The notes beneath the pieces were generated by a model. That model had not been told where the DNA came from and ran no database searches. It saw nothing but the letters and a program-made list of their open reading frames with translations. The position numbers were made by a program, and so were the translations under genes. DNA of 64,000 bases from Geosiphon pyriformis uo1 (Eukaryota > Fungi > Glomeromycota), in assembly GCA_016748015.1 (NCBI GenBank), contig JAAOMT010000521.1:94907-158906 (forward strand), given 5' to 3'. How positions within the stretch are numbered: position 1 is the stretch's first letter; the number at the start of each line of letters is the position of its first letter. This document shows positions 14,090-37,304 of the stretch, piece after piece.

Positions 14090-15530
14090 TTGAAACAGTT
14101 AAAACAATTTTTGAAAAATGATACATCTGAGTTGACAGAGTTTATTAAAGAAGTATAAACTCACATTCATATTATCACTTTCAAATATATTTGCTATAGA
14201 ATATAACTCTCAAAATAAATTTTTATTTTATAAAGATGCAATTTTTAAGAAGTCTGACCTATTATGAAGTTTTATAGTGCCACAAAAACTCTAGAAAAAG
14301 ATAATTTTTAAGTTATTAAATACAAACTCCTAAAATATTAAAAAAGTTTGTCGGATTGCAACAAATGGTCGAAAGGACTACATACTTGTTTTAGAATATA
14401 CAAACAGAAAAACTATAAATAAATATCTTAAATCAAACTTCTCTAAAATGAAGGTTGTAAAAAAATTATGGCTTGCAAAAAAGCTAACCTGGGAGATTTT
14501 CTGCCTTCATAAAGAAATGTTATTCATAGAGATTGGTAAGTAAAAGATATATAATTAAAAAGCAGAAGATATTATTTAACTATTTGATTTTCGAATTCCC
14601 TAAAAAGAATTCTCAATATATACGAAATGAAAAATTTGATACATATGTACTGAAAAGGCTTTTATAAAAGCTATTAGGTAAACATTCTTTATTATTGAAA
14701 GTAACTCAAAAAAAAAACCAATTTAAAAACTTCTGCCAAATATGTTCAATTTTACACTGAATGTTGAAATAAATTACCACAAAGTTGCCCATCTATAATT
14801 GAAATAATTAATTGTCTTAACGAAATTGAATGGCAATTCAGTTTTTCTTTTTAAAAAAACATTGAATCTGAGAAAACATCCAGTAATTTCAATTATGAAA
14901 ACTCTTTAATATAATTAAAAAAACATTCAATATTATCAAAAAAAAGTTTGTTGCTTGATAATTATTTAAAAGTTGTTAACACAATAAAAAAATATCTTGA
15001 AAGCAATCAAAAAACACCTAAAAATATTTTGTTTATTTAAGTATTAACACTATAAAAAGCACTATTCACTATATTTTACTTGGGTTCTCTTTAGTATATA
15101 AAGTTAAAACAAAGCTTGAATTAATAAAAGTATTTCTAAAATTTTAGAAACAACAAATATCAAGAATTTTCTTAACCAATTTTTTTTAAATTATTGTTAT
15201 TTTAATAAAATTGGCACTCTTTAAGATAAAATTAAAGCATTTGAACTTTTTTTTAATAATAACAGAAGTGAATAATAAAAATATACAGCAGAATCTTGCA
15301 ATTTGTTATAATAATAGATAAGAAACAATAAAAAATAATAAAAAAACATAAAAACTTTATTTAAAAACAGCAAAAATAAGACATAAAAAAGCATAATAAT
15401 ATCTTAAATAGTGTTATCTAAATAGATAAAAAACAACAAAAAATAAGAAAAAGTATTTAAATTCTATTTAAAAACAACAAAGATAGCAGATTAAATACAC
15501 AATACCAACTTGTATTTTGTTAAAAAAAAA
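14090..15530 (+). pseudogene. Heavily eroded kinase + SEL1-repeat pseudogene
   Basis: LTEFIKE; YILVLEYTN..KYLKSNF; VIHRDL followed by gtaag donor; YTEC*NKLPQSCPSI; then KKYLESNQKTPKN..YILLGFSL..QFFLNYCY..KAFELF, homologous to the N-terminal domain and SEL1 repeats of the genes starting at 21678 and 32010. Confidence 0.75.
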
Positions 15531-19301: not shown

Positions 19302-20375
19302 TCATTGAACATGTAAAGGTCTTTCTCCCGATATAATTTTACATGAAATAATAGCAAAGCTGTATATATCGCTATACTTAGTATGAGAACCACCCTTGCA
19401 AATTTCGGGCGCGAGATACTCAAGAACACCATAAGTGTTTCCAGATTGTGGAGCGTCATCTGCAGGACGACAGAGTCCAAGATCAGAAATAACAATTTTT
19501 AAGGGGTTTNNNNNNNNNNNNNNNNNNNNNNNNNNNNNNNNNNNNNNNNNNNNNNNNNNNNNNNNNNNNNNNNNNNNNNNNNNNNNNNNNNNNNNNNNNN
19601 NNNNNNNNNNNNNNNNNNNNNNNNNNNNNNNNNNNNNNNNNNNNNNNNNNNNNNNNNNNNNNNNNNNNNNNNNNNNNNNNNNNNNNNNNNNNNNNNNNNN
19701 NNNNNNNNNNNNNNNNNNNNNNNNNNNNNNNNNNNNNNNNNNNNNNNNNNNNNNNNNNNNNNNNNNNNNNNNNNNNNNNNNNNNNNNNNNNNNNNNNNNN
19801 NNNNNNNNNNNNNNNNNNNNNNNNNNNNNNNNNNNNNNNNNNNNNNNNNNNNNNNNNNNNNNNNNNNNNNNNNNNNNNNNNNNNNNNNNNNNNNNNNNNN
19901 NNNNNNNNNNNNNNNNNNNNNNNNNNNNNNNNNNNNNNNNNNNNNNNNNNNNNNNNNNNNNNNNNGTATCACAAAATGGACATATAGGAGATCCATTAAT
20001 GATTATACCCAAGTTGCCACATTTAAAACACTTGAATTCATCTGAAAGCTGGTTAAAGAAAGCTTCAAAATCTAAAAATTCTCTGTTGAAATTATCAGGG
20101 TGTTTAAAGCCTCGATTTTGGAATCGTAAAATGATATATTCAAGATCGTCTTGGTCTTTTAAAGTAAGTTCATAGACATTGATATCAGTAATATTACTTC
20201 GATAACATAAGTTAATTACTCCCACTGCTTTTAAATAGAGTTCAAATGCTTTTTGGAGGTTTTTTGTGGTTTCCCATCCTTTTTGATAACACCATCCAAG
20301 GTTATATTGTGCATTTTGATTTCCTGCCTCTGCGGTTTTTAAATAGAATTGATATATTTCTTCATGATTTTTCAC
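19302..20375 (-). pseudogene. Frameshift-detached C-terminal part of the 21678 gene: last SEL1 repeat, CxxC..CxxC motif, TKL-type kinase (spans gap)
   Basis: AQYNLGWCYQKG; CFKCG..CPFCD; after the gap IVISDLGLCRP..YGVLEYLAPEI..YSDIYSFAII..GERP (kinase subdomains VII-X), ending early. Confidence 0.8.
19510..19965. other. Assembly gap (N run)
   Basis: Run of n characters. Confidence 0.98.
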
Positions 20376-20439
20376 TATTTCCCATCATTTCAATAATACG
20401 TTCTAATACTGGTTTGTGGATTCGGATTTCCCACTTTTT

Positions 20440-21678
20440 CTAGATCTTCCGTTGTTTCCAATCGATTTCGATGATATGCTCTAAGAGCGTATTGTGCTTT
20501 AAATGTCCTACCTCTGCAGCCTTTGAATAGAGTTCAAATGCTTTTTCCTCGTTTTTCGTCGTTCCCCATCCATTAGCATAACAAACTGCCAGATTATATT
20601 GTGCATTTAAATGTCCTGCCTCTGCAACTTTTGAATAAAGTTTGAATGCTTTTTTCTCGTTTTTCGTCGTTCCTTCTCCATTTTCATAACAAATTGCAAG
20701 ATTGTATTGTGCATTTAAATGTCCTGCCTCTGCAACTTTTGAATAAAGTTTGAATGCTTTTTTCTCTTTTTTTGTCGTTCCTTCTCCTTCATCATAACAA
20801 AGTGCAAGAGCGTATTGTGCATCTAAATGTCCCGCCTCTGCTGCTTTTGAATAGAGTTCGAATGCTTTATTTGAATTTTTTGTCGTTCCTTCTCCATTAG
20901 CATAACAAATTGCAAGAGCGTATTGTGCATCTAAATGTCCCACCTCTGCTGCTTTTGAATAAAGTTCAAATGCTTTTTCTGAAGTTCTCATCGTCCCTTC
21001 TCCTTCATCATAACAAAGTGCAAGACTGTATTGTGCATCTAAATGTCCTGCCTCTGCAGCTTTTGAATAGAGTTGAAATGCTTTTTTCTCATTTTTCGTC
21101 GTTCCTTCTCCATCTTGATAACAAATTGCAAGACTGTATTGCGCATCTAAATGTCCCGCCTCTGCTGCTATTGAATAGAGTTCAAATGCTTTTTCCTCGT
21201 TTTTCGTCGTTCCTTCTCCATTAGCATAACAAATTGCAAGAGCGTATTGTGCATCTAAATGTCCTACCTCTGCAGCTTTTGAATAGAGGTTAAATGCTTT
21301 TCCTCGATCTTTTGAAATACCAATTCCATTATTATGACAATGACCTAAGAAGAATTGTCCAAAGGAATCTTCTGCATTCGCTGCTTTCTGAAATTCTAAA
21401 AATGCTTTTGTCAAATTAGGAATAGTTCCAATCCCATGTTCTAAACAAAATCCGAGCAAGATATTGTCTATCGAACGCTTTGGACTTTTATTATTCAAGC
21501 AATTGAATAAGTCTTTAGGAGTTTTCTGATTGCGCACAAGATGATTTTTAACTAAGTCAGCAACTTTTGAATATTCACTAGCTGGAAAAATGGGCAAACT
21601 TTCATTGATGACTATGAATATTCCTTCAAACCAGTCGAGGGGTGAAGTTGGGTTTTCAATTGATGATTTTGAAGACAT
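20440..21678 (-). CDS. SEL1-like repeat protein (paralog 1): ~106-aa N-terminal domain + 8 conserved 36-aa repeats, frameshifted before its kinase
   Basis: ATG 21678 (MSSKSSIEN) matches the paralog start at 32010; repeats AQYxLAxCYxxGxGTxKNxxKAFxLYSKAAEAGHLD; 1-bp deletion (tta aa- gca) at ~20497 ends the repeat frame. Confidence 0.85.
   Translation of the reverse strand: MSSKSSIENPTSPLDWFEGIFIVINESLPIFPASEYSKVADLVKNHLVRNQKTPKDLFNCLNNKSPKRSIDNILLGFCLEHGIGTIPNLTKAFLEFQKAANAEDSFGQFFLGHCHNNGIGISKDRGKAFNLYSKAAEVGHLDAQYALAICYANGEGTTKNEEKAFELYSIAAEAGHLDAQYSLAICYQDGEGTTKNEKKAFQLYSKAAEAGHLDAQYSLALCYDEGEGTMRTSEKAFELYSKAAEVGHLDAQYALAICYANGEGTTKNSNKAFELYSKAAEAGHLDAQYALALCYDEGEGTTKKEKKAFKLYSKVAEAGHLNAQYNLAICYENGEGTTKNEKKAFKLYSKVAEAGHLNAQYNLAVCYANGWGTTKNEEKAFELYSKAAEVGHLKHNTLLEHIIEIDWKQRKI
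20495..21360 (-). repeat. Coding tandem array, 108-bp unit x8
   Basis: 108-bp periodicity of tattgtgcatctaaatgtcc. Confidence 0.95.
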
Positions 21679-23719
21679 GATTTTCAAGCAACACAAATAG
21701 ATTATTAAACCCTGAATGTTTTGTATGGGTAAAGAATTATTTTCAAGGCTAATAAATAAGGATTTCAAATTCCCGAAAAGGCTAAATTGTAAACGTTAGA
21801 AAGTTCTGAAAATGTATTTTGGCATTACTTTATCAAATAAAAAATAATTTGGCTCTAATGAAACAATCAGTAAGATTCGCTCAAAGAAAGAAATTTAAGT
21901 ATAATGAAATTTAAAATATAATTTCTCCAAATGTAAGTTCTGGAAATGGATAAAGTCTGAGAACGACTCGTTTCGCTGCTTCTTCTGTGAGCTCTTGTCT
22001 CTTAAGTCAAAGTATTTTAAATAAAAAATTGTTTAGCAAGACCGAGATATATTAAAAAAGTTTTGTAAAGCTATAAAAAATACTAGCGTCTCTTTTTAAT
22101 TGATATAATATTTAATGAAGTCGAATCAATTAGTTAGAATAGACTTTTTTTAAATTAATTATAATTCGAAGTCTACTAGCAAACTTTATTAACTTTAAAA
22201 AATACCTGTCTAATTAAGTTTTCAATGTATATATATTCACACTTAATTTTCTTAAAAACCCCAAATTATTGGTAAGATGGTTTAATAAGTGTCTTAGAAA
22301 CTAATGAATTCAGTTATGTATTGGGTTTGCTGACAAATAGACTTCTTTTTTCTAGGCATTTATTGAATCAATTTGCTGTAATCATTCTATCGCTGTTTAG
22401 CTCAAATATCTTGACGCAACAATTAGTCATAACTTTTTAAGAATTCAATAAAAACAATTAAAATGTTTCCTAATTAGAATTATTAAAATTAAAAAATTCG
22501 CTATTTTAAATTGAATTCCGAGATGCAAAATTTAAATTAAACTCTTGTGATTCATTTTTTGCTTTAGCTTAATAGAATATTTTTATTCAACAGAAGTTTA
22601 TATATTAACCAAAACCCGATTGCTAAAAATATAAAATTTAAATGAAAATTAGTTTCACTAAATGTTACCAATATTGTTTAAATATCAACTGCAATTTAAT
22701 ATACATCATTTGGCATTATTATCAATTAATCAATTTTGTTTATTTTAAAAAACAACAGCTATATAATAAATGAAACCTGGCTTAAAATTGTCAATAATTG
22801 CAATTATTAATTTCTTTTTTACTTTCAAGAAAATAGATAACCTAAATTTTTGATTTTAAATTTATAAAACAAAATAAACTATTAATATAATAATTGAGAG
22901 GTCTCTTTAAATTAAATTAAATTAAATCAATCAATCAATCACTTTTTTAAGAAAATTTTCTACTTTGTTAAAATTCATTTATTTAAGTATATATTAATTA
23001 ATACACAAATATTTAATTATTTACAACTTTCTCAAACAATAAATAGTTTAATAAATTTAAAATCTAAATATTAATCAACAATACCAGATAGAAATAAAAA
23101 AATATTCATCACAAAAAACTAGCTAAAAATTCCATATTATGATGTTTAAACTGTAAATATTAAGAATTTTATACATAAAACTTTTAAGACTATATAAGAT
23201 TTTATTGAGAATTTTTTTAAAGTCTACAATTATTTTCAAGGTATTCAAATTTTGTTTAAATGACAATAAATCATGTTTTGATATAAACAATAACAAAATA
23301 AACTTTTCAAAGAATGCTATTAAAAAATTTAAATACGTTAATACTCAATAATCTAAAAATTTTCATAAATTTATTATATAATAAGTACTAATTGCAATAA
23401 TTAATTGCTAAAATGTAAAATTAGTTGTATCAAACTTCATTTTGAAATTCTGTGTTAATACAAAAATCTCATAATTTAAAGCTTTTATTACAACTAAAAA
23501 AAAATTTCACTTTAAATAAAAACCATGGAAAAAAATTAAGCCTTGTTTTGTATATACAGCACTTAATTAAACAATCAAAAAAATAGCTTCCAGAATGTGC
23601 ATTTTTGTATAACAACAAATAATTTGATTAATTGAATGAAATTTTTGATTTAATTATTTCAGATTTAAAATTTTTAATTTCACCTTATTTTCATCAATAA
23701 TTACTTCATATTTTCTTCT

Positions 23720-29565: not shown

Positions 29566-30117
29566 NNNNNNNNNNNNNNNNNNNNNNNNNNNNNNNNNNN
29601 NNNNNNNNNNNNNNNNNNNNNNNNNNNNNNNNNNNNNNNNNNNNNNNNNNNNNNNNNNNNNNNNNNNNNNNNNNNNNNNNNNNNNNNNNNNNNNNNNNNN
29701 NNNNNNNNNNNNNNNNNNNNNNNNNNNNNNNNNNNNNNNNNNNNNNNNNNNNNNNNNNNNNNNNNNNNNNNNNNNNNNNNNNNNNNNNNNNNNNNNNNNN
29801 NNNNNNNNNNNNNNNNNNNNNNNNNNNNNNNNNNNNNNNNNNNNNNNNNNNNNNNNNNNNNNNNNNNNNNNNNNNNNNNNNNNNNNNNNNNNNNNNNNNN
29901 NNNNNNNNNNNNNNNNNNNNNNNNNNNNNNNNNNNNNNNNNNNNNNNNNNNNNNNNNNNNNNNNNNNNNNNNNNNNNNNNNNNNNNNNNNNNNNNNNNNN
30001 NNNNNNNNNNNNNNNNNNNNNNNNNNNNNNNNNNNNNNNNNNNNNNNNNNNNNNNNNNNNNNNNNNNNNNNNNNNNNNNNNNNNNNNNNNNNNNNNNNNN
30101 NNNNNNNNNNNNNNNNN
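29566..30117. other. Assembly gap (N run) inside the SEL1 array
   Basis: Run of n characters abutting repeat 15. Confidence 0.98.
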
Positions 30118-31692
30118 TTTTTCTAAATTTTTCATTGTTCCCCATCCATTTTGATAAGAAACTGCAAGATTGTATTGTGCATCTAAGTGTCCTGCCTCTG
30201 CAGCTTTTGAATAAAGTTTAAATGCTTTTTCTAAATTTTTCATTGTTCCTAATCCATTTTGATAAGAAACTGCAAGATTGTATTGTGCATCTAAGTGTCC
30301 CGCCTCTGCTGCTTTTGAATAGAGTTCAAATGCTTTTTCTAAATTTTTCATTGTTCCCCATCCATTTTGATAAGAAACTGCAAGATTGTATTGTGCATCT
30401 AAGTGTCCTGCCTCTGCAGCTTTTGAATAGAGTTGAAATGCTTTTTTCTCATTTTTCGTCGTTCCTAATCCATTTAGATAGCAATTTGCAAGATTATATT
30501 GTGCATCTAAATGTCCTGCCTCTGCAGCTTTTGAATAGAGTTGAAATGCTTTTTTCTCATTTTTCGTCGTTCCTTCTCCATCTTGATAACAAATTGCAAG
30601 ACTGTATTGTGCATCTAAATGTCCTGCCTCTGCAGCTTTTGAATAGAGTTTAAATGCTTTTTCTAAATTTTTCTTTGTTCCCAATTCATTATCATAACAA
30701 AGTGCAAGACTGTATTGCGCATCTAAATGTCCTGCCTCTGCAGCTTTTGAATAGAGTTGAAATGCTTTTTTCTCATTTTTCGTCGTTCCTTCTCCATCTT
30801 GATAACAAATTGCAAGACTGTATTGTGCATCTAAATGTCCTGCCTCTGCAGCTTTTGAATAGAGTTTAAATGCTTTTTCTAAATTTTTCTTTGTTCCCAA
30901 TTCATTATCATAACAAAGTGCAAGACTGTATTGCGCATCTAAATGTCCTGCCTCTGCAGCTTTTGAATAGAGTTGAAATGCTTTTTTCTCATTTTTCGTC
31001 GTTCCTTCTCCATCTTGATAACAAATTGCAAGACTGTATTGAGCATCTAAATCTCCCGCCTCTGCTGCTTTTGAATAGAGTTCGAATGCTTTTTCCTCAT
31101 TTTTCGTGGTTCCTTCTCCATTAATATAACAAAGTGCAAGATTGCATTGTGCATCTAAATGTCCTGCCTCTGCAGCTTTTGAATAGAGTTGAAATGCTTT
31201 TTTCTCATTTTTCGTCGTCCCTTCTCCATTAATATAACAAAGTGCAAGATTGTATTGTGCATCTAAATGTCCTGCCTCTGAAGCTTTTGAATAGAGTTGA
31301 AATGCTTTTTTCTCATTTTTCGTCGTTCCTAATCCATTAATATAACAAAGTGCAAGATTGTATTGTGCATCTAAATGTCCTGCCTGTGAAGCTTTTGAAT
31401 AGAGTTGAAATGCTTTTTTCTCATTTTTCGTCGTTCCTAAACCATTTAGATAGCAATTTGCAAGATTATATTGTGCATATAAATGTCCCGCCTCTGCTGC
31501 GTTTGAATAGAGTTTAAATGCTTTTTCTAAAATTTTCATCGTTCCTTCTCCATTTTGATAACAAATTGCAAGATTGTATTGTGCAGTTATATCGCCCGCC
31601 TCTGCTGCTTTTGAATAGAGTTCAAATGCTTTTCTTTGATCTTGTACGGTACCAATTCCATTGTCATAACAATGTCCTAAGAAGAATTGTCC
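30118..31692 (-). repeat. Coding tandem array, 108-bp unit x>=14.5, with a 216-bp higher-order repeat
   Basis: Repeats 7, 9 and 11 are identical in protein, as are 8 and 10. Confidence 0.95.
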
Positions 31693-32010
31693 AAAAGAAT
31701 CTTTTGCATTCGCTGCTTTCTGAAATTCTAGAAATGCTTTTGTTAAATTAGGAATAGTTCCAATCCCATGTTCAAAGGAAAAGCCGAGCAAAATATAGTC
31801 TTTCGAACACTTTAAACTTTTATCATTCAAGCAATTGAATAAGTCTTCAGGTTTTTTTTGATTGCGTTCAAGATATTTTTTCACTAATTCAGCAACTTTT
31901 GAATATTCGCTAGCTGGGTAAATGGCCAAATTTTCTTTGATGGTAATCAATGCTTCTTCAAGCCAGTCGAGGTGTGAAGTTACATTTTCAATTGATGAAG
32001 TTGAAGACAT
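30118..32010 (-). CDS. SEL1-like repeat protein (paralog 2): ~106-aa N-terminal domain + at least 15 repeats, 3' end lost in gap
   Basis: Uninterrupted ORF from ATG 32010; the N-terminal 106 aa differ from paralog 1 at 26 positions; 36-aa SEL1 repeats continue to the gap. Confidence 0.92.
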
Positions 32011-32638: not shown

Positions 32639-33000
32639 TTAAACAGAATTTATAATTTTTATTGCTACTTCTCCATCTCTTCCTTGTCTTTCATATTCCA
32701 ATGAACCATGATGTTTTATGGTACTTTCACCAATTAATTCATCAATTAGGGTTGCTTTATAAATTATACCAAACCCTCCTCTAGCAATTTCGTTGATATT
32801 TGACAAACGCTCCCATGAAATCCATTCATAGTAATTCAATCTACCAATATATTTACTATAAATAAGATTCTTAATTATTTCATCAAATATTTTATTACCG
32901 CTTTAAAGTCGCAGTAAAGTTTTTCTAAAAATATGAGCATACGAATTCATAATATTTTTTCGAATGCTTCTCTGGCACATTTTACACTCATTACAATCAT
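32639..33000 (-). pseudogene. Kinase N-lobe fragment
   Basis: CKMC..*SGNKIFDEII..YEWISWERLSNINEIARGGFGIIYKA..EVAIKII* (Gly loop and VAIK), truncated. Confidence 0.75.
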
Positions 33001-36190: not shown

Positions 36191-36401
36191 CATACGTAAA
36201 AACTTCTAAAGCCACTTAAAAACTTCTAAAGTCACGTAACAGCTATCAGCTTTTTTCAAGATTGCAACGCGTGAAGTAGAAATTTTTTATAAATATAGTT
36301 GATTTTTAAAATTCAAAAAACCCATCTCATTCAATAATAAATCGAAAATCAATGATAAACTAAAAATCTTGCATAATAACAGAAATCCATCAAATTTCAA
36401 A

Positions 36402-37304
36402 ATGATTTCAAATCTCCATCCAGAAAATTATATCAATGGTCCAATGAACCAGATCGCAAAAAATTTCCTTGAGTCGATCAATCGTGGAGAAACTTATTGT
36501 GATATCGCACTCAAAATCCAAAACAATCTTAAAAGTTACAACCTTTCCCTTGAATATCTAATTGAAAAACTTACGAATAGAACACATTATGTTCGACAGT
36601 TTAGATGCCTTCTCGGATTCTGTCATCAGCATATCAAGGAATGTTTTGATCCGATAAAAGCATTTGAAGCTTACGAGGTTGCCTCCGATAATGGTTACTC
36701 GTATGGTCATTTATTCCTTGGAATCTGTTTCGAGATTGAATTTGGCGTGGAAAAAAATCTAGAAAGAGCTTTCGAATTATATTTGATGTCTGCGAATGAT
36801 AATAATGGACATTCCCAATATCGGCTTGCACGGTGTTATCAGCGTGGAATAGGAACCATTGCTGATATGGAAAAATCATTAGAATGGTTTCTTAGATCTG
36901 CTGAATCTGGTCAATTAGGTGCCCAAAATAACGTCGGATGCTTTTACAAATCAGGATTAGGTACTCGGTGAAATCCTGTCAAAGCTTTATATTGGTATCA
37001 AACAGCAGCCATGGCTGGTCTTCCCTGTGCTCAATTTAATTTGGCCGAGTGCTTTCGAGAGGCACAGGGTACAAAAAAGAATGATAAACGAGCATTATAT
37101 TGGTATAAGAAAGCTGCAGCGGGTGGTGATCTTAATGCCAAGGTTCAGCTGGCTAATCTCAACAAAGAACAGGTCATCAAAAAGGAGAAGAAATATGCAT
37201 CAAACGTTTATTTGAGCTCGGCAAGTTGTGATGATCCTCAGGCTCAGTTTGCTCCAAAGGAAATGTACGAAAATCGAAAACTTGGTCTAGATCACCAACG
37301 GTAA
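36402..37304 (+). CDS. SEL1-repeat (HCP-like) protein, intronless, interrupted by one in-frame TGA
   Basis: ORFs 36369-36971 and 37011-37304 share a frame; GLGTR*NPVKALYWYQTAAMAGLPCAQFNLAEC continues the SEL1 repeat through TGA 36969-36971; ~5-6 divergent repeats. Confidence 0.8.

Follow-up and report, generated by a model that had tools for sequence, protein, structure and literature searches.

A Sel1-repeat array with a variable, predicted groove-lining helix in a gap-truncated member of the Sel1-TKL kinase family of Geosiphon pyriformis

The expansion of the Sel1 and TKL kinase gene families in Glomeromycotina was reportedly set out by Tisserant in 2013, the repeat arrays of high internal conservation (HIC) of fungal NLRs are said to go back to Paoletti in 2007, and non-RD receptor kinases of the TKL/IRAK type in plant and animal innate immunity reportedly to Dardick and Ronald in 2006. 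The Sel1-repeat array of one gene (gene A) was analysed here in a stretch of 64,000 nt (the window) from Geosiphon pyriformis uo1 (contig JAAOMT010000521.1, positions 94,907 to 158,906 of the forward strand; all coordinates below are those of the window), where an earlier note had proposed an undescribed, NLR-independent recognition system diversified by recombination. The Sel1 and TKL kinase expansion of Glomeromycotina is well documented and has been labelled 'signalling-related' (Dallaire 2021, PMC8647823; Malar 2022, PMC9453076; Maeda 2018, PMC6123716); genomes of arbuscular mycorrhizal fungi (AMF) carry a mean of ~3400 Sel1 and ~1500 Pkinase_Tyr motifs each (PMC9453076). HIC repeats are those that share more than 85% of their amino acids over a length of 100 residues or more (Dyrka 2014, PMC4986451). 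In a superhelix of Sel1-like repeats (SLRs), first helices make up the concave side and second helices the convex side, with L7r and Y11r in the core, and the concave helix-1 groove was seen in crystals to bind peptide tails (4BWR paper, PMC3851747); Helicobacter pylori Hcp/SLR genes show positive selection on surface residues (Ogura 2007, PMC1941758).

Gene A is an intact-so-far, gap-truncated, ordinary member of the known expanded family. On balance it is probably a cytoplasmic Sel1-repeat protein in which a fast-evolving groove, birth-and-death evolution and the duplication and exchange of units provide a diversified binding repertoire. The gene was read in AT-rich eukaryotic DNA on the minus strand as an open reading frame (ORF) of 631 codons (30118..32010), running without a stop codon from the ATG at 32010 to the edge of an assembly gap of 552 N (29566..30117), which ends the array; because 30118 is the edge of this gap it is not a biological boundary, and unit counts refer to the units seen up to the gap, inside which the array may continue. 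The N-terminal domain (residues 1–106, 31693..32010, minus strand), a helical head with a degenerate SLR, is family-defining, gave no match to Pfam and was helical with a low predicted local distance difference test score (pLDDT) in an AlphaFold2 model. It is followed by a degenerate leading Sel1 unit (residues 107–142, 31585..31692, the upper edge being the upper end of the stretch that had been singled out), by the canonical units A1–A13 (30181..31584; 108 nt or 36 amino acids each, delimited by Tandem Repeats Finder (TRF) and translation) and by 21 codons of a partial unit A14 (30118..30180) cut by the gap, all on the minus strand. TRF reported the tandem array at 30118–31633 with 14.0 copies of 108 nt, 88% matches and 0 indels, and the Pfam Sel1 profile matched gene A in 14 stretches (E=6.4e-165, 530 bits against a cut-off of 30.7).

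Best protein matches to gene A were annotated G. pyriformis proteins, followed by Sel1/PK_Tyr_Ser-Thr proteins of Rhizophagus and Diversispora. Residues 1–142 had at least 161 matches in the own genome at 34–82% identity (the best, at 78–82%, all lead into arrays), and many of these N-terminal copies lead into long open frames. The family architecture was drawn from 31 further loci of the same genome and runs from the N-terminal domain through 3–30 Sel1 units, two degenerate units and a linker with four CxxC pairs to a kinase; in the paralogs the part from the N-terminal domain through the kinase N-lobe is one exon, the remainder of the kinase lies in later exons, and the kinase motifs are GEGGFG, VALK, HGDLHPGN (a non-RD catalytic loop), DLG and APE. 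Gene A has the shared N-terminal domain followed by a Sel1 array by which the Glomeromycotina Sel1-TKL kinase family is recognized; the Cys-rich linker and the PK_Tyr_Ser-Thr kinase are present in paralogs and, as pieces, in the neighbouring gene B, and Sel1-only relatives also exist. No signal peptide or transmembrane segment was evident in family proteins on inspection by eye (no predictor), and Pfam detected no NACHT, NB-ARC, NOD or STAND domain in gene A, gene B or the full-length paralogs, which bears out the proposed independence from NLRs. Organism group, Pfam content (Sel1 with PK_Tyr_Ser-Thr), copy number and a clustered context rich in transposable elements (TEs) are those of the documented expansion, from which gene A, as a member, does not differ in kind, so that the system is not an undescribed one. 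What is added to the published family descriptions is the pattern per position, with a ratio of non-silent to silent change (dN/dS, omega) above 1 on the concave face and a conserved convex face; no report of site-specific selection or of a concave-face pattern in AMF Sel1 arrays was found in a literature search outside of which most subscription journals lay.

Two features of the family proteins were observed in passing. The linker between array and kinase is a conserved segment of ~60 residues with four CxxC pairs, without a match in Pfam and possibly a family-specific pair of zinc ribbons. One annotated G. pyriformis protein carries the module of array, tail and linker twice, without a kinase N-lobe, and has the appearance of a gene model that is chimeric or wrongly joined, or of a partial duplication in tandem.

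For the analysis of unit variation both arrays were cut in register from the A of AQY, which gave 20 full units (13 from gene A and 7 from gene B); with the partial unit, and a degenerate leader besides, the expected ~21 units in two genes were recovered. The scaffold of 36 residues proved near-invariant as described, 15 of the 36 columns being identical in all 20 units, and the concentrated pattern of variation is real and far from chance. At the five columns highlighted beforehand the residues found were exactly those listed, namely 4 (N/S/A), 7 (I/L/N/V), 10 (Q/L/I/D/A/E), 11 (N/D/E) and 13 (E/L/W); these columns do vary, but together they hold only 42% of the pairwise amino-acid differences and form part of a wider set of about 9–10 variable columns (4, 7, 10, 11, 13, 16, 19, 20, 24 and 36), nine of which hold 72%, columns 16, 19, 20 and 24 (helix 2) and 36 being as variable as the five. 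The variation is combinatorial only in part, with 13 distinct combinations in the 20 units and a gene A that is built from ~6 unit types, some of them exact duplicates. A code-like reading was rejected: there was no sign of a discrete residue-to-ligand code, the columns holding 4–9 effective residues each with modest linkage. Mean identity between unit pairs of gene A was 80–81% for amino acids (86% to the consensus) and 88% for nucleotides, that of gene B 78% for amino acids, and gene A ranks 5th in internal identity among 29 sampled family genes, which is high and unexceptional.

A single-sequence AlphaFold2 model of gene A residues 1–430 consisted of helix-turn-helix repeats with a pLDDT of 75–90 over the array. 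In unit numbering helix 1 spans 35–11 (13 residues) and helix 2 spans 16–31 (16 residues), joined by loops of 3–4 residues (12–15 and 32–34). The top Foldseek matches were all SLR crystal structures (probability 1.0), the closest in structure and sequence being 6ok3, 4bwr, 8sxq, 6deh and SEL1L, and gene A belongs to the Sel1/SLR proteins by profile and by superhelical fold alike. Placed on a helical wheel, positions 36, 3, 4, 7, 10 and 11, the variable ones of helix 1, fell within an arc of 120 degrees, a compactness matched by only 2 of 924 six-position subsets, and the conserved helix-1 positions 1, 2, 5, 6, 8 and 9 occupied the complementary arc; no significant clustering was seen there for the helix-2 set 16, 19, 20 and 24. 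With a register shift of 2, L7r and Y11r of 4BWR are unit positions 5 and 9 here. The same shift places columns 36, 3, 4, 7, 10, 11, 34 and 35 at positions 2, 5, 6, 9, 12, 13, 33 and 34 of the tetratricopeptide repeat (TPR), an equivalence that rests on alignment of the motif (L-G/A, Y, A, Y/F, A) and not on superposed coordinates; those TPR positions are hypervariable, concave and in contact with ligands (Magliery & Regan 2005, PMC1261162). The variable helix-1 columns are thus predicted to line the concave groove, and the suggested stripe of variable sites on the groove-lining first helix is upheld by the arc and by the SLR and TPR equivalences, with positions deduced from the register.

In a comparison of column entropies the arrays of Geosiphon, Diversispora and Rhizophagus all proved variable on helix 1 and conserved on helix 2; in SLR proteins from bacteria and metagenomes both helices are variable. 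Since the exposed side of helix 2 is conserved in AMF and free in bacterial SLRs, the sites of variation cannot be predicted from exposure alone. The bacterial SLR proteins EsiB/c5321 (4BWR), LpnE (6DEH), LceB (8SXQ) and Oxalobacter 6OK3 share the fold with gene A at 30–34% identity (E to 4e-74); unlike the fungal family they occur as secreted or periplasmic proteins of few units, lack a kinase and vary on both helix faces, and the selection described in H. pylori acts between alleles of strains, in the Sel1-kinase family between the units of a single array. Hypervariable concave positions on a fixed scaffold are likewise known from the TPR ligand-binding code and from designed consensus TPR and DARPin-type libraries, the TPR pattern being one across unrelated TPR proteins and the present one internal to single genes, between their units, in one young family. 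It was also seen that many metagenomic and bacterial proteins related to the array also carry GTPase (MMR_HSR1/dynamin), caspase (Peptidase_C14), TIR or trypsin domains, fusions that are typical of prokaryotic conflict systems.

Selection was analysed on 416–458 units from ~30 genes of this genome, using FastTree nucleotide trees, an M0 fit of our own and a 16×16 alpha/beta likelihood grid; the tests approximate fixed effects likelihood (FEL) and M1a/M2a and are not those of PAML or HyPhy. The pooled codon model with F3x4 frequencies gave a kappa of 1.7 and a global omega of 0.39. When the silent rate was set to the gene mean, a fixed-effects scan of the 25 paralogs from outside the window gave beta values of 1.4–3 at columns 3, 7, 10, 13, 19 and 36 (p<1e-3), and an M1a/M2a-like mixture on paralogs assigned an omega2 of ~2 to 15% of the columns (likelihood ratio test (LRT) 264). 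Ratios calculated within genes and without trees were 1.3–3.6 with confidence intervals (CIs, gene bootstrap) above 1 at columns 3, 4, 7, 10, 13, 16, 19, 34, 35 and 36, and 2.6–4.3 for the window genes at columns 4, 7, 10, 13 and 19. In a split-column design against selection bias, in which one half of the scaffold columns served to choose the pairs and the other half to estimate the silent rate, omega was 1.6–2.3 for the concave set (lower bounds of the CIs at least 1.43), 1.0–1.4 for the helix-2 set and 0.3–0.4 for the scaffold. Taken together, the tests put dN/dS above 1 at columns 3, 7, 10 and 36, and further at 34/35 and 13, in 25–27 paralogs. Ratios above 1 were also obtained for four genes of Diversispora epigaea (columns 3, 7, 10 and 36) and for five array ORFs from four loci of Rhizophagus (columns 3, 7, 10, 34, 35 and 36). 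We conclude that throughout the family columns of the concave face evolve at the neutral rate or moderately above it and that exposed convex positions are constrained, a pattern hard to explain by solvent exposure alone. The structural and evolutionary idea of the earlier note thus holds at the level of the family, replicated in three orders of Glomeromycotina.

Silent differences were used to ask whether the scaffold is homogenized. Their proportion (pS) was 0.227 in scaffold codons between units of one gene (0.19 in gene A), 0.295 between units of different genes and 0.249 in the N-terminal domains between paralogs (0.229 for A against B); 35% of the units had their nearest relative in another gene. 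Since silent divergence of units within a gene is about that of paralogs, and since many nearest relatives lie in other genes, the uniform scaffold is attributed mainly to purifying selection in a young family, and concerted evolution as its cause was rejected on silent-site divergence and nearest-neighbour analysis. Adjacent units were more alike than distant ones in the sampled family genes. Units A6–A10 (30505..31044, minus strand) are a recent higher-order duplication of a 216-nt, two-unit block, in which A8 equals A10 and A7 equals A9 exactly and A6 is 1 nt off. Unit B2 of gene B (21037..21144, minus strand) is 1 nt from A6, A8 and A10 and has an exact tract of 113 nt in common with A10, all other pairs of A and B units being at least 8 nt apart; at least one transfer of a unit between paralogs (B2 with A6/A8/A10) is real. 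Of diversification by recombination, the duplication in A6–A10 and this one exchange between paralogs were found, but not a scaffold homogenized as in NLR arrays. Across the family the six-residue combinations amounted to 301 among 416 units, with 401 distinct unit sequences, and arrays of 3–30 units showed no positional conservation among paralogs.

The HIC TPR, ANK and WD arrays of fungal NLRs resemble the Sel1 arrays in their near-consensus repeats, in concave-face variation and selection, in unit duplication and exchange and in a large repertoire, and positive selection on the concave face was found here at family level as in HIC arrays. The likeness to them that had been proposed holds only to this extent: gene A stands at 80–81% identity, short of the 85% that delimits HIC repeats, identical units are confined to the A6–A10 block, and the silent-site data do not show the concerted evolution, or homogenization, of HIC arrays. 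The Sel1 family differs further from fungal NLRs in having no NOD/STAND ATPase and no N-terminal effector of the HET, lipase or prion type; its output is the C-terminal kinase.

A number of observations weigh against a selected repertoire, and several of them fit a merely relaxed constraint, in which a young, TE-like amplified and partly decaying family would carry exposed columns, such as any SLR lets change, that drift neutrally (omega ~1) without selected ligand diversity; we regard this explanation as rather unlikely. A conservative closest-pair estimate for the concave set was 1.16 (CI 0.93–1.46) and compatible with neutrality. When the silent rate was allowed to differ between sites, clear significance remained at columns 3 and 7 alone in the paralogs (weak at 32 and 31) and at column 7 alone in the window genes; for genes A and B the scan with a mean silent rate gave beta values of 2–4.5 at columns 4, 7, 10 and 13 at p=0.015–0.05, uncorrected for 36 tests. 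The expectation of a dN/dS above 1 at the variable sites was supported for the family by four approaches and only marginally for the window genes on their own (M1a/M2a-like LRT 7.5, p=0.024 for A and B; LRT 5.3, p=0.07 for A alone). The tree-based tests assume one recombination-free tree per array, though units have demonstrably been exchanged, and tree building and testing drew on the same 108 nt. Concavity was deduced from DSSP helix limits, helical periodicity and published SLR and TPR structures, not from coordinates. Stops occur in roughly a third of the family copies, and gene B is frameshifted, with at least two frame changes and in-frame stops after B7 (20375–20520, minus strand). No kinase is visible in gene A before the gap edge at 30118, because the gap cuts its 3' end, and tblastn with a full-length paralog as query found no family coding sequence or kinase below the gap from 29565 to 26000. 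Sel1/kinase genes of Rhizophagus irregularis show TE-like methylation and lie in the non-core compartment (PMC8647823), and the silent divergence among units resembles that among paralogs. Against a mere loss of constraint, three other designs gave omega above 1 with CIs that exclude 1, and the closest-pair estimate is biased downward because its pairs were selected on total distance; moreover, the exposed convex positions are strongly conserved in three AMF lineages and free in bacterial SLRs, and the same columns recur in lineages of three orders.

It would also be conceivable, if improbable, that old and specialized unit types jointly bind one extended and conserved partner, with purifying selection acting against their homogenization. 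The ~6 unit types of gene A and a significant mutual information between variable columns fit such a fixed differentiation, and low silent divergence together with multi-nucleotide codon differences at variable columns would follow from conversion and retention too, but the many six-residue combinations and unit sequences, the variable array length without positional conservation and the fact that there is little homogenization to select against speak against it. That unit order, unit number and some sequences were mis-assembled or collapsed from paralogs appears very improbable. The array adjoins the 552-N gap, other family arrays also run into N runs, and the three public runs that match the stretch (none of them on record as RNA) do so as contigs of 40–350 nt from two samples, which are too short to span units. 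In R. irregularis, where protein clusters hold near-identical homologs whose lengths are exactly 36 residues apart, one unit of 36 amino acids also separates the versions of an otherwise identical protein in two assemblies of a single isolate, and Rhizophagus indels can therefore not be counted as polymorphism. However, 29 of 30 bins of the stretch were covered by read-derived contigs at 95% identity or more with few variant letters, and the column pattern recurs in ~29 genes here and in three other assemblies, so that it is independent of this locus being correct.

The mechanism that the preferred reading of a diversified binding repertoire suggests is as follows. The array would fold into an SLR superhelix in which ~26 of the 36 positions per unit, the convex helix-2 face included, are held by purifying selection, while the helix-1 stripe (36, 3, 4, 7, 10 and 11, with loop 34/35 and 13) would line the groove and change at 1.5–3.5 times the silent rate. 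New arrays would arise by gene birth-and-death, by tandem duplication of blocks of one or two units and by occasional exchange of units between paralogs, and each gene would therefore present a different groove. The groove would bind a protein or peptide ligand and its occupancy may control the C-terminal kinase. The family would then be a repertoire of binding specificities with a putative receptor function. The Sel1-kinase family is common to plant-symbiotic AMF, and a bacterial or symbiont ligand for the groove, as proposed beforehand, is speculation.

A wider proposal, which we put forward only tentatively and hold to be doubtful, is that the hundreds of Sel1-array kinases in Glomeromycotina make up a receptor-kinase repertoire that resembles innate immunity but has no NOD. 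In it the hypervariable concave groove of each array would recognize a different non-self or partner-derived protein, the signal would pass via the non-RD TKL kinase, and new specificities would come from duplication and shuffling of units and from positive selection. If it were true, candidate sources of ligands would be endobacteria or cyanobionts, mycoviruses, incompatible nuclei or hyphae and plant factors, and the regime would have been kept since the divergence of Archaeosporales, Diversisporales and Glomerales. Non-RD TKL/IRAK and LRRK-type kinases likewise combine a solenoid sensor with a TKL kinase that lacks the HRD arginine (HGD here); the likeness is one of analogy only, the Sel1 family being cytoplasmic (by eye) and having SLRs instead of LRRs. 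Few domains are as inflated in AMF as Sel1 and TKL kinase, whose role has so far been given only as 'signalling-related'; the signature found in three orders, with a conserved scaffold, a conserved convex face and a fast concave groove, leads to the specific hypothesis of a kinase-wired binding repertoire, which in function would parallel the immune repertoires of NLRs and receptor kinases, though without a NOD domain, and it pinpoints the residues for swapping or randomizing in binding studies. For the locus of gene A itself, an ordinary gap-truncated member, the news is modest.

Gene B (20440..21768, minus strand) has a paralogous N-terminal domain and a Sel1 array (Pfam Sel1 E=4e-90) with the canonical units B1–B7 (20497..21252, minus strand, by translation in the unit register), for which TRF reported a related second array at 20483–21306. 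A stop follows B7 and the gene continues in other frames only: its last Sel1 unit and the start of the Cys-rich linker (19966..20375, minus strand) are in another frame than the array and run into a gap at 19510–19965, beyond which a piece of the kinase C-lobe with the DLG and APE motifs (19305..19508, minus strand; Pfam Pkinase E=1.2e-8) has 70% identity with an annotated paralog from Geosiphon. Either gene B is a pseudogene or its sequence contains assembly indels. Three more diverged genes or fragments of the Sel1 family were found on the plus strand (5555–6364, 14930–15423 and 36369–37274), and with genes A and B the family therefore has five or more members clustered at this locus. N gaps directly adjoin family arrays or kinase regions in gene A, in gene B and at two further loci elsewhere in the genome, and the Sel1-kinase family seems to cause assembly breaks systematically here. 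At 32640–32839 (minus strand) an isolated ORF of 66 codons without a Pfam match resembles the start of a kinase N-lobe (G-loop GGFG, VAIK); it was rejected as a part of gene A, since it lies 5' of the ATG with no Sel1 array preceding it, and is probably a family fragment.

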